Assembly (NCBI GenBank): GCA_002104945.1
Contig: MCFH01000009.1
Span: 558,001-622,000 of the forward strand
Length of the DNA stretch: 64,000 nucleotides
Reading direction: 5' to 3'
Source: Piromyces finnis finn
Lineage: Eukaryota > Fungi > Neocallimastigomycota
The position numbers and the translations under genes are program-made. Below are positions 32,024 to 46,907 of this stretch, in pieces. Position 1 is the stretch's first letter; every line of letters starts with the position of its first letter. The notes under the pieces are model-generated. The model was not told where the DNA came from, did not search any database, and was given only the letters and a program-made list of their open reading frames with translations.

Positions 32024-32733
32024 TTAATAAATCCGTAGTAATTTTTCAAATTGTTTATATAAATCATGATGTGTTTCACCAAAAATTATTTCAATATTTT
32101 CTAAAGTTTTTCCTTTACCCTATTTTTTAAATAAAACAAAAATTAAATTGAATATATGTTTTATATTAATATCAATATCAATATATAAAAATATATTTCA
32201 TTATTATAATTGGCATACTTGGTCTCTATTATTATATGCTTTAACATTTGAGAGTAGCGAAGTAAACTATTGACGAAATAATATAGTAAATGTATATATA
32301 TTTATTATATTAATTATAATTATCTTAAAGTTATTAATATTATTTACATACTTGATCATATGATAATTTGGATCTAGCTAATTTAAAGAAATCTCTTCCA
32401 TCAATAGTTTCTGGTGGATGTTCTTTTGGAATTGGACTATCATATGTTTTTTTTAATGCTTCTTTTATATATTAATATGTTAATTTTTATAATTATCGCT
32501 AAAATTAAAATTTAATTTTTGTGTTTGGAGTTTTTTCATTAATACCTTTTTTGGTATAGCATTTTCCATTAAAATCATTGAAATCATCTAAGTCATATTT
32601 ATTAAATAACAACGTTGATGTTGATGATACATTTGAATTTGATTTTAAAGGTGATAAAGAATCTTTATTACTATTTAATTCAGATTGTTTGATAAAATCA
32701 TCCTCAATACTATTATTGTTGTTATATTAAGTG

Positions 32734-32765
<32 letters not shown>

Positions 32766-33671
32766 ATTATTATATTTATATAAATTTGTTTTATTAATAA
32801 GTGTATTACGACTTAATTCTTACTTATTATCTTCTTTTATACCACGTTTATTTTCTATTTAGCATTTTATAAAATAAAGTTAAACATTATTAATAATAAT
32901 ATTTATAAAATTTCACAGTATTATTATAAAAAATTATAAAAATTACCCTAAAAATATATAGAATATGAAAATAATATGGGTATATTTAATTTTTTATACA
33001 TAGATTAAATACTTAAAAAAATAAATATAATTATTTAATATATACTTTGTTTTTAGAAATATATTTAGTTTTATATTCTTCAATGTCTTCTTCGCCAAAC
33101 GACTGAAGAACGTTCTTTTTAAAATTCGATAATTTTGCTATAACTTTTGCCATTTCATTCATTTTTTTATCACATTTATAAATATAACTTTCTAATTGTG
33201 TGATTTTTTGAGCATACTCTACAATTATATAATATTATTTAAATAATTTAAACAATAAATAACATCATTTAATAATTCTAATAGATATTATATTTTTAAA
33301 TATTAAAATATTAATATAAAAAAAAAAAAATACAAATTATAGTATTTAAATATATTTATATTAAAAAAACTTCATTCTAAAAACCTTTAATTTCATTTTG
33401 TTTTTGAATAAGCTCATTTCTCAATAAAATTACTTCAGAATCTTTTTCGGTTATCTTAAATATATATATATATATATTCAAAACAAAAATTTAAAAAAAA
33501 TTATTAGAATAATTCGGGAAAAAGTAAAGACTATAATAGTACAATAAAAATCTACTATTTTATTATATTATTTAATATTAATATTAAATATACCTTGTTA
33601 TTAAAAGCATTCCTAACTGCATTAACTGCATTCTCAAATTCTGATTCTAAATTTGCCGATGTTGTATTCAT
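32024..33671 (-). CDS. Uncharacterised coiled-coil protein resembling the Arabidopsis At4g15545 family; predicted 1-nt exon at 32947
   Basis: Coil ending KLSNFKKNVLQSFGEED. C-terminal domain IDGRDFFKLARSKLSYDQFTSLLSNVKAYNNRDQGKGKTLENIEIIFGETHHDLYKQFEKLL resembles the VDGKEFFRQVRSRLSYEQF...EIFG...LY..FE.LL motif I recall for that family. Confidence 0.75.
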
Positions 33672-34989: not shown

Positions 34990-37900
34990 TCAAAATAAAT
35001 CATATTTTCTCCTTTCTATTCCATAGTAATTATTTTTTTTCTTGTTAGATGAATAACTGATTTTATATTTCCCACCACTCTTTTTTGGAGTAACATAACT
35101 ATTTTCAAATACTAATTTATTAAAAGTATTTGTTGTTTTATTATTCCAATTAGATGGTGTAGAAGCTTGATTTCCATTATCTTTAATATTATTACTCAAT
35201 TTGTCGTTAGATGAAACTTTATCCTTACTTAAAAATATATTATTTTCATTATTTTCCTCTATTTCTTCTTCTTCCTCCTCCTCACTACTACTACTACTGC
35301 TACTGCTACTATTATTATTTATATCAAATTCATCACTTTCATCATCTTTGCTTTTATTAGATATGAAACTTACTTTTTCTTCTGATACTCTCTGTATAAT
35401 ATCAATATCATTACCAAAACGCCAACTTGAACTTTTTCTTATCGGCTTTAATGATTTTAATAATGATTTACTAGATTGTGAATTTTTTGGTGTTTCTAAG
35501 TTATTACTACTATTGTTTTTATCATTATTGTCGTTATTAGTAATACTAGAAAATTTAGAACTCAACGGTGTCGCTATTTTCATAGAACTTTCGATAACAG
35601 TAGGTGGTATTTGTATAATAGTAGGCGAAACACTAGATTGTGATTTATCAATATTACTATCAATTATTAGTTCTGGTGTTGATTTAATTATTTTTTCATT
35701 TTTCATTTGACCTGCAATCTCTTCATTATTCGATAATGTACTATTATTTTCATTAAAATTATTACTTGATAATTCATTTAATTCATTTTGTGAATTATAT
35801 ACAATAGTATCTTGTGAAAATGAAAATTTTATTGGTGAATTTGAATCTACATTCGTTACAGGTATAAATGTTTCATTTTTTTCTTTATTTTTATTTTTAT
35901 TCAAACCTATTTTCTGAATGTCAAAGTTATATTCGTTCTTATTTTCACTATTTTCATTTTCACTGTAATTTTCAAATAAGAATTTTCTACTGATATCATC
36001 AAATGCTAAATATTCCTCACTTGTATCAGAATCAATATATTTATCATCCATTTCATCTAAATTATTAATGAGTGTAGTATTATTTCTACTTTCAATATCA
36101 TAGTTTTTGCCCATAATGTTCTCATTATTATTAACTTGGGCACTTGTACTTTTATTCTTTTTAAGTGAAATAATATTGTTATCATTTTCTTGTTCACCTT
36201 CGGAATCTACTATAAGTGTTGCATTTTCATTTTTTTCCTGTTGGCTGGATTCTTGTGATTGTATCTGTGTTTTTTTCTTTATACGTCTAATTCTTTTAGG
36301 TTTCAATATTATTTTTTGACTTGACTGGACTTGGGAATCATTACTATCATCATCACCTCCATCAGTATTACTATTATTGTTGTTGTTATCATCGTCAATA
36401 TTATTTTTGTTGTTATTATCATTACTATTTATTACAATTATATTATTTCCTTTATCTACATCATTTTGTGATATATCTTGATTATTTTTTAGTTCGTTTT
36501 CTAAAAGTTCCATTGTTATTTTTCGTTTTTTACCTCTTCTTTCTTTTGAAATTTTGCATTGATCCATATAATATCTTTTAACATCTTTAATTTCTAATAG
36601 AATATATGGTAATTTGTCTTCATAACTTAAGTTTTTCCATTCTTTTTCTAATTCATCAAAAAGGTCCGAAAGACCAATTGAAGGTGTTGATTTAAATAGT
36701 ATTTCATAACGATCTTTAACAAAATATTCAAATGCTTGAACTTTAGGTTTAATTATTGTATTAAGTTTATCTGATTTTACGCTATTATGCTCATTATCAA
36801 TTTCATTATTTTTAGCATTTTGAATCTTTTTAGATTTATTTATAGAACGTTCTGGAAATCTTAATACTGGAGATGCCAATGGATATCCTTTAGGAAATCT
36901 CCTTACAATATAATTAAAAGCTTTTACTATATCATTGTCATTATGTAATTCTTTGAAATCAATATCTTTTTCTATCTGATCCTGATCTATCTCATTTTCT
37001 TTATTATTGTTGAATTTTATATACAGTATTATAGATATTAATAATTTTATTATTCGATTATATATAAAAATATAAATAAATAAAAAAAGCATATATGTTT
37101 AATTTAAATATTACTTAAAAATAGTATTAAGGCTTTAATATGTATATTAAATAATAAACAATAAAAAAATTATAATACCTGATTTATTTCTTAATTGATT
37201 TTCTAGACAAAGTTTAGCAATACTCGGATTATGAATTAATGCCCTTTGTAAATAAGCATATTTTATTAAATCTTCATAATCATCTTTATATTCTTTTGCC
37301 TTTTCCTCATATTTCTTTTTTTATCCTTATTTTCATTTTTCCAATTTTTTGCAACAATTTTTAATGCTTCATTCCTAGTCTTTGAAGGATTTTGCTTTAT
37401 TACAGTATTAATTGTATCTTTTGTATATATTGAAAATGGATTTGGTGGATGTTTAATTACTGAAAAATAGGGTATAGATAATTGTTTGGAATGATTGTAC
37501 ATTTCATTTAGCAAATTTAATTCTGTATATTCTTTCAATTCTGTCATAATTAGTTCTGAATCTGGTATAATTGGTATATTTTTTGTTAATTGCTGATTAG
37601 ATGAAATTTCATTTTCATTCTCATTTTCATTTTCAATAATCGTTTGAAAAGAATTATCTGTTCCACTATTTTTATTAGTCTTTTTATTTTTTAAGTTTTT
37701 CTTTGCTATTTTTGTCTGTTTTCTAACTACATCTTCAATATGTTTATTTTTTATTCTTTTTTCTAATGTTATCCATTCCTGATCTATTAATCTTTCCAAC
37801 TCTTCTTCATCTAAATTATGTATATTTTGATGTTCTGAATTAGTTTTATTTTGATGAATTAATTCTTTTCTTTTTTTAGCATAGAAATTAATATATCCTA

Positions 37901-38504
37901 ATGCATTTAATTGAAATTGATTCACAATATCAATTTCTTTTTTATTTATTTTATTTGGAGCACTATCATTCTCTTTATTTAAAATTAAATCTATATTGTG
38001 TTGAATAATTTTATGCTCCTTTAAAGTTAATATTTTTCTTCTTGTAATATATTTATCACGTTTAATTTCATTGTTTGAAATTCGTTCTTCTTTAGGTAAA
38101 TTTGATACTATAGTTTCATTGGAAAGTTTTGAATTATTACTATTATCATTATTATTAGAAGTAATAGTATTTTCTATATCTTCTAATAAACTATTATTTA
38201 TATCTTCCAAAGTAATTATATCATTCTCTGTATTCTTATGAATTGCTTTTAATTCATTGAAAATATCGTCAATATTTTTTGGATTATTTTCTTTATTTTC
38301 GGATACGCCAACCTTCTTTGAAATCTTGTTTTTTGTTTCTTGTTCTTTTTTATTTGTATTTAATATATCTATAAAGAAATTAAATCTATCAGATATTTTT
38401 TGTTGACTTTTTGTTGATGGACTTGTTTTTCTTTTTTTCTTTGATAACTCAAAAGCTCTTTTTTGATAAAATAGCCTCTTTTTCTTATTGGAAGCAAAAT
38501 TCAT
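34990..38504 (-). CDS. Low-complexity protein with two HMG-box-like domains; apparent frameshift at A7 run (37316-37322)
   Basis: Box 1: HPPNPFSIYTKD...ALKIVAKNWKN, continuing as KYEEKAKEYKDDY in the shifted frame. Box 2: PKVQAFEYFVKD...LEKEWKNLSYEDKLPY. One intron at about 37178-37000. Confidence 0.7.
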
Positions 38505-45422: not shown

Positions 45423-46907
45423 TTAATGTTGGCCATTAGATTTTGGGTGAGCAGCTTGGTATTGCTTTATTCTTTGTTCACAGTATGGTCTGAAACTCTT
45501 AATTAAACCACGAACTGGAAGAGCGGAAGCTTCACCTAAAGCACAAATAGTACGACCTTCAATGTTGTAGGTAATTCTATCTAATTGATCGAGTTCTTCT
45601 AAAGTCATGTTACCGACTTCAAGACGTTCCATCATTTCAGCCATCCAACCAGTACCCTAAATATAAATTATGTATAAAAATTAATATTATTTTTTTATTT
45701 TTATTGCTTATATATGTAGCCTTTTTCTTTATTTAATTTTATTTATACTTACTTCACGACATGGAGTACATTGACCACAACTTTCGTGTCTGTAGAATTT
45801 ACTGAAACGGCTAATAGCCTTAATTGGATCAACAGATTTATCTAAAACTAACATGGCAGCAGTACCTAAGGAAGAACCACAGTCACTCATGGAATCGTAA
45901 TCCATAACAGCGGTATCAGCAAGTGGTCTTGGAATCATTGGGCAAGAAGCACCACCTGGAATAACAGCAAGAAGGTTGTCCCAACCACCCTTAACACCAC
46001 CAGCATGGCGTTCAATAAGTTCACGCATGGAAATACCCATAGATTCTTCAACAACACATGGGTTGTTAACACAACCAGAGATACAGAAAATCTTAGTACC
46101 GTGATTACGTTCACGACCGAAGCTAGAGAACCACTTACCACCTCTTCTCATGATAGTTGGAGTAGCTGAAATAGTTTCGACATTGTTGACAGTAGTTGGG
46201 CAACCGAAAACACCATAGTCAGCTGGGAATGGTGGCTTAACTCTTGGCTTACCTTGTTTACCTTCAATAGATTCAATTAAAGCAGTTTCTTCACCACAAA
46301 CGTAGGCACCAGCACCACGTTGAATGTAAACATCCATATCCCAACCAGAGTTACAGGCATTCTTACCAATAAGACCAGCCTTGTAAGCTTCATTAATAGC
46401 CTTTTGAAGAATTTCAGCTTCATTAACAAATTCACCACGAATGTAAATGTAAGCTTTGTGAGCTTGAATAGCTCTACCAGCGATAAGAATACCTTCAATA
46501 AGCTTGTGTGGATCGTTACGAATAATTTCTCTGTCCTTACAAGTGTTTGGTTCACCTTCATCACAGTTAATAACAAGGTATCTTGGTCTACCATCTAATG
46601 GCTTGTTTAAGAAAGACCACTTAAGACCAGTAGAGAAACCGGCACCACCACGACCTCTCATACCACTAACTTTCATTTCATTAATAATCCAATCTTGACC
46701 CTTTTGGAGAATTTCCTTGGTCTTGTACCAGTCACCACGCTTTAAAGCACCCTTAAGGCTCCAATCATGACGACCATATAAGTTAGTGAAAATACGATCT
46801 TCATCAGTAAGAGGTTTAGAACCAGCGAAGGTTGAGAAAGCACTTTTGGCAACAGTAGTAGCCATTGGCTTTAATAAAGATTGCTTAGTTAAGGTATTGG
46901 CTAACAT
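45423..46907 (-). CDS. nuoF: NADH dehydrogenase 51-kDa flavoprotein subunit (NuoF/NDUFV1), probably hydrogenosomal; 2 exons, about 462 aa
   Basis: [37 protein letters not shown], Fe-S ligands [12 protein letters not shown]...TICALG. Presequence-like [13 protein letters not shown]. Intron 45752-45657. Confidence 0.95.

Follow-up and report, generated by a model that had tools for sequence, protein, structure and literature searches.

In the At4g15545-like gene of Piromyces finnis, two consecutive exons do not agree in phase: exon 3 ends on a complete codon, and the 31-nt micro-exon downstream of it can be read only when it is entered in phase 1. We asked whether the base needed to join them is supplied by an exon of a single nucleotide, a G at position 32947 of the window (the whole stretch of 64,000 nucleotides of contig MCFH01000009.1 that was analysed here).

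Exon structure of the P. finnis gene

The positions of the exons and introns in our gene model are given in Table 1. The original prediction had described an exon 3 that ends AAC AAA/gtatat in phase 0 and a micro-exon that is open in phase 1 only, and this description was base-for-base correct on the minus strand. Reading the sequence also confirmed the motif tttttag/G/gtaatt at 32947, which divides the gap of 191 nt so that an intron of 98 nt precedes the G and one of 92 nt follows it; the gene's own introns range from 84 to 166 nt. The AGGGT at this point can be parsed in one way only, as a canonical AG, a G and a canonical GT. Entered in phase 0, the micro-exon gives KINVV and a stop, and in phase 2 K and a stop; phase 1 yields ENKRGIKEDN. 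When exon 3 was joined straight to it, the frame broke five codons into the micro-exon. The single G had further been claimed to keep the frame through to the conserved C-terminal domain. This was borne out by the joined-frame check, in which the coding sequence including the G was 771 nt long (256 aa) and stop-free up to the TAA, and by all eight lineages and the cDNA of three species described below.

Table 1. Features of the At4g15545-like gene and its surroundings, in window positions (slashes mark splice junctions, here and in the text)
Feature	Position	Strand	Length	Description
At4g15545-like gene, whole CDS	32024..33671	-		nine exons including the 1-nt exon; ATG 33671, TAA 32026-32024
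Exon 1	33671-33594	-
Exon 2	33454-33385	-
Exon 3	33218-33046	-	173 nt	end ...TCT AAA AAC AAA, phase 0; donor gtatat
Intron A	32948..33045	-	98 nt	gtatat...tttttag; 10% GC
One-nucleotide exon G (putative)	32947	-	1 nt	context tatatttttag/G/gtaatttt; first base of Glu codon GAA
Intron B	32855..32946	-	92 nt	gtaatt...aaatag
Micro-exon	32824..32854	-	31 nt	encodes (E)NKRGIKEDN(N); entered in phase 1, left in phase 2; donor gtaaga
Intron after the micro-exon	32710..32823	-	114 nt	end aataatag
T run in that intron	32764-32734		31 nt	about 25 nt ahead of the acceptor aataatag at 32710
GAG acceptor of the public model	AG 32704-32703	-		in frame; joins exon 3 to 32702
Next exon	32546..32709	-	164 nt	entered in phase 2
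Exon 7	32461-32352	-
Exon 8	32266-32219	-
Exon 9	32119-32024	-
Two HMG-box ORFs	34990-38504	-	700 and 412 aa	upstream of the At4g15545-like gene
NuoF/51-kDa-type flavoprotein ORF	45729-46907	-	392 aa	Complex1_51K, SLBB and NADH_4Fe-4S domains

A motif count in the window gave a background of about 0.064 AG-N-GTA[AT] motifs per 191 nt, and of about 0.009 for YAG-N-GTAA. A lone AG-N-GTA motif in one gap would thus be mildly unlikely by chance and is only suggestive; the AG/G/GTA site gains its significance because every orthologue carries one.

Precomputed matches to PF25972 (At4g15545_C) are on record for the public P. finnis protein (P0013) and for all full-length relatives. Our Pfam scan of P0013-P0015 returned no match, with a model set that seemingly lacked PF25972, and scans with exon-sized queries returned none either. 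The gene is probably expressed in P. finnis, as four RNA-like runs of this species contained a share of 0.26-0.32 of the words sampled from the gene region, where about 0.35 is expected, by our own count, for runs that contain mature mRNA alone. The intron that follows the micro-exon carries a long T run (Table 1).

Conservation of the probable one-base exon in related fungi

Relatives were gathered with an exhaustive search for exon 3, then with word searches using the matches and finally with contig look-ups. The resulting genomic set comprised 10 loci from 8 lineages: the P. finnis window, Piromyces sp. E2 (L014), Anaeromyces robustus (L010), three uncultured or Logan relatives, metagenome contigs among them (L002-L006, L022, L023), Neocallimastix copy 1 in three assemblies (L001, L016, L017) and Neocallimastix lanati copy 2 (L015).

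An AG/G/GTA site lay between exon 3 and the micro-exon in 10 out of the 10 genomic loci, and hence in 8 out of 8 lineages, so that the G is common to at least three genera and to both Neocallimastix copies. In every genomic locus exon 3 ended in phase 0 as KN[KR]/GTA, and the exon after the micro-exon required entry in phase 2. The counterparts of intron A measured 133-375 nt in the relatives (98-375 nt across all loci) and those of intron B 75-166 nt; the G was never close to an end of the gap, and all sub-introns of the 10 genomic loci were at least 75 nt long. The micro-exon was 31 nt long in seven lineages and 10 nt (seven codons fewer) in Neocallimastix copy 1. Its peptide, ENKQN.K[ED]DN, was conserved only in the frame entered through the G, and entry in phase 0 met a stop in 6 out of the 7 versions of 31 nt.

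Apart from the AG/G/GTA site, the introns around it could not be aligned with MAFFT. AGGGTA occurred at a rate of 9.7e-5 per nt (207 kb, both strands counted, the sites themselves included in the count). The joint chance of finding it in each of the eight gaps was about 10^-12.6 when the lineages were treated as independent, a treatment for which the absence of other alignable intron sequence gives no more than a rough justification. None of the other AG-N-GT motifs in the gaps was conserved.

Branch-site-like CTRAY motifs were present upstream of the internal AG in 4 out of the 8 lineages; no such motif was found upstream of the internal AG in P. finnis. Neocallimastix copy 1 has a perfect TACTAAC 75 nt ahead of the real internal AG. 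Its intron A also contains a short tandem repeat (ataatataatgtaatatagtgtaatat...; L001:3930-3990, also in L016 and L017) with two or three ag/T/gt decoys, the use of which would create a TAA codon.

Transcripts of related species

The cDNA contigs belonged to three species: the A. robustus contig L011 (Logan SRR12917191), contigs L007-L009, and the JGI contigs L012-L013. At the junction they read AAA or AAG, then G, then AAAA, and they encode KNK-E-NKQN.KEDNN-IEND; both the micro-exon and the additional G are thus present. With the G included, the P. finnis model has the same length, 256 aa, as the cDNA-derived protein P0014, and the two were identical at 218 out of 257 positions (85%, with 2 gap columns); in the pairwise alignment, ENKRGIKEDNNIE of P. 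finnis stands opposite ENKQNVKEDNNIE. A metagenome scan with the protein alignment recovered the cDNA contig L007 again and nothing else.

In the JGI contigs L012 (129-966) and L013 we observed one T fewer in ...AAGTATAGTT(T)AGACGAT... than in the related genomic contig L023. Their ORF halts at residue 160 and the remainder of the protein runs on in another frame, which may reflect either a misassembled T run or an allele that truly carries a frameshift.

Intron A begins, and intron B ends, with the same letter as the putative exon. Because all three bases are G, mature cDNA alone fits equally well with a one-nucleotide exon and with a single 190-nt intron whose boundary is shifted by one base, either AAAG/ta...ag (TA-AG) or gt...ta/GAAAA (GT-TA); with such a boundary, the 191-nt gap would contribute either its opening or its closing base as the extra G of the mRNA, and splicing would make no use of the internal AGGGTA. 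The comparison of L011 with the genomic contig L010, both from A. robustus, bears directly on this point. As a single intron, the junction between exon 3 and the micro-exon could only be AG..TT, GT..TA or TA..AG, so that both forms of the shifted boundary, GT..TA and TA..AG, are formally possible splits. They would be non-canonical introns, however, in a gene whose other seven junctions were all GT..AG, whereas a pair of GT..AG introns, one on each side of G3734 in L010 (ttaaag/G/gtagga), accounts for the junction. A shifted boundary would also leave unexplained why AG/G/GTA has been retained in eight lineages, always with 75 nt or more on each side, within introns that do not otherwise align. 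Consistent with a single intron, word searches with P0001, P0018 and exon 3, which covered database proteins of 31-397 aa, returned genomic read-through ORFs only and no partly spliced product that had lost just one of the two introns. Since the internal site is conserved and the alternative requires a non-canonical intron, we favour the one-nucleotide exon and consider a shifted boundary very unlikely.

Public gene models at the junction

The original prediction had also named an escape route, in which transcripts skip both small exons through an in-frame GAG acceptor. This is exactly the public P. finnis model P0013 (BCR36DRAFT_281960, 243 aa), which the skip model reproduced letter for letter, and which lacks 13 residues of the variable linker compared with the 256-aa model. 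The acceptor was absent from the six other genomic lineages in which the next exon was read (with GAA or no such codon in its place) and from the three cDNA species. In P. finnis the GAG codes for Glu, and its final AG is there by coincidence.

The skipped form could still be the main mRNA of P. finnis, with the G exon as an ancestral feature that is little used or confined to a minor isoform. Its frame is open, it is identical to P0013, and it loses only those 13 linker residues. The first AG past the long T run, however, is that at 32711-32710, and the GAG acceptor follows seven bases later; in P. finnis, moreover, the splice sites on both sides of the G are intact and the conserved frame of the micro-exon is open, and none of its relatives with the next exon read has the GAG. 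In addition, P0013 is recorded from genome annotation sources only, with no transcript-assembly source, in which respect the A. robustus protein differs. We therefore regard the skipped form as a very improbable main product. The in-frame acceptor would nevertheless permit a shorter isoform in P. finnis, one that is probably functional.

Five public models treat the junction between exon 3 and the micro-exon with five different patches, as expected where a predictor cannot place an exon of 1 nt. Besides P. finnis, 4 out of 5 other models were wrongly patched, each differently: that of Piromyces sp. E2 uses an upstream donor (QSF/ENKQ), that of N. lanati copy 1 a phase-1 donor inside exon 3, and those of N. 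lanati copy 2 and of Neocallimastix 'constans' still other routes. The A. robustus model alone corresponded to the transcript-supported protein.

Genetic code and genomic neighbourhood

A frame problem of one base could also come from an artefact or another mechanism, that is, a base missing from the assembly, a pseudogene, translational frameshifting or a non-standard code. A homopolymer sequencing error, for instance, would yield just such a problem. The same architecture was nevertheless present in ten independent assemblies or contigs, and ribosomal frameshifting is unnecessary when the G is already in the cDNA. With regard to the code, the ciliate genetic code was considered for the low GC content of the window (18%) and discarded: the HMG-box ORFs of 700 and 412 aa are read with the standard code without any TAA, which in DNA of this composition indicates that TAA is a stop and that the standard code applies. 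The conservation across ten loci and the cDNA of the relatives thus refute these readings for practical purposes.

The HMG-box neighbour upstream of the At4g15545-like gene was kept in Neocallimastix (L001:1-1429) and in Piromyces sp. E2 (L014:1-172), and a Cnd3 (condensin) gene was found downstream in Neocallimastix and A. robustus. Because these neighbours are kept, the locus is syntenic across genera. Elsewhere in the window, we observed an ORF with the domains of a NuoF/51-kDa-type flavoprotein (Table 1), which in an anaerobic fungus is presumably hydrogenosomal.

Discussion

We consider it very probable that the G at 32947 is a true, deeply conserved one-nucleotide exon of the P. finnis At4g15545-like gene. 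Its use in P. finnis itself we infer from the anatomy of the gene, the conservation of the site and the cDNA of relatives.

The arrangement would consist of two short introns of the ordinary GT-AG type, 98 and 92 nt long, with a single base between them. The 3' splice site of intron A would physically overlap the 5' splice site of intron B, so that the complexes recognising them could not coexist and the two introns would presumably be removed in turn, by intron definition. The first removal would attach the G to a full-size exon, and the intron that remains would then be an ordinary one with ordinary sites. Formally, such stepwise removal would be a recursive splice that leaves one base. The G would open a codon for Glu (for Asp in one paralogue) and would set the frame for the 31-nt micro-exon and the C-terminal At4g15545_C domain.

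Two known arrangements resemble this scheme. Recursive splice sites, or ratchet points, consist of AG/GT with an exon of zero length and occur in long introns of Drosophila and vertebrates. There, too, a 3' splice site abuts a 5' splice site and forces the stepwise removal of both halves, but at recursive sites no base remains and the introns concerned are very long, whereas P. finnis would keep one base between introns of about 100 nt. A zero-length site was rejected for this locus, where the site is AG-G-GT and the G is retained in the cDNA of relatives. In the fungal stwintron (spliceosomal twin intron), the outer intron has one of its splice signals split by an inner intron, and no base lying between the two enters the mRNA. 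Here as there, a short intron region of a fungal gene would undergo two splicing reactions in succession, but no such nesting fits the P. finnis sequence: TA follows exon 3 plus G, TA also precedes the G in front of the micro-exon, and no nested GT..AG restores an outer signal. One base, moreover, would reach the mRNA.

The original prediction had suggested that single-base exons may be a recurrent, unrecognised feature of this genome. The word 'unrecognised' holds in part only: such exons are published for Arabidopsis, Fusarium and Coprinopsis, and for the gut fungi our literature search found no paper on micro-exons in Neocallimastigomycota or Piromyces. The closest case is the one-nucleotide exon of Fusarium CYP621A, which has an AG/G/GT site conserved among orthologues, is supported by transcript reads, reconciles mismatched intron phases and was missed by annotation (Nelson & Syed 2026, PMC12940212). 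Both are fungal genes with an identical AGGGT site that is conserved among orthologues, solves a phase mismatch and escaped annotation. Fusarium belongs to the Ascomycota, however, and its G occupies the middle position of the Gly codon of an invariant PKG motif (PMC12940212), whereas in the At4g15545-like genes of Neocallimastigomycota the G would begin a codon for Glu or Asp within a variable linker and is directly followed by a second micro-exon (31 or 10 nt). The single-nucleotide exon of Arabidopsis APC11 is constitutive and was formerly mis-annotated (Guo & Liu 2015, PMC4674806); it differs in being an A (A333) of a plant gene and in having been proven with protoplast reporter constructs, while the P. 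finnis case relies on comparison and on the cDNA of relatives. Long-read annotation of Coprinopsis cinerea identified 13 one-nucleotide exons in 13 genes (PMC12230235). It demonstrates that such exons can occur repeatedly in a single fungal genome and that gene models break when they are missed (PMC12230235), as in our case; Coprinopsis belongs to the Basidiomycota and has a genome-wide long-read catalogue, of which we found no equivalent for gut fungi in the literature searched.

A bolder proposal is that Neocallimastigomycota tolerate and retain exons of 1-4 nt throughout the lineage, through strict intron definition combined with stepwise, recursive-like splicing, and that the G exon acts as a conserved on/off point. 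We think this unlikely. If it were true, missing the G would cause an out-of-frame join with a stop in the micro-exon in 6 out of the 7 lineages with a 31-nt version, and the product without the G would be a truncated, coiled-coil-only protein or a target for decay.

With one-nucleotide exons already known in plants and other fungi, the P. finnis case does not reveal a new mechanism. It adds a deeply conserved case, sited directly beside a second micro-exon, to the few that have been documented. Its main value lies in annotation, with the public P. finnis protein short by 13 residues and four further models mispatched, and it suggests that pipelines used to annotate gut-fungal genomes should include an explicit search for exons of 1-4 nt wherever the phases of adjacent introns do not match. 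For these fungi, the G exon would be a further data point for the recurrence of such exons.
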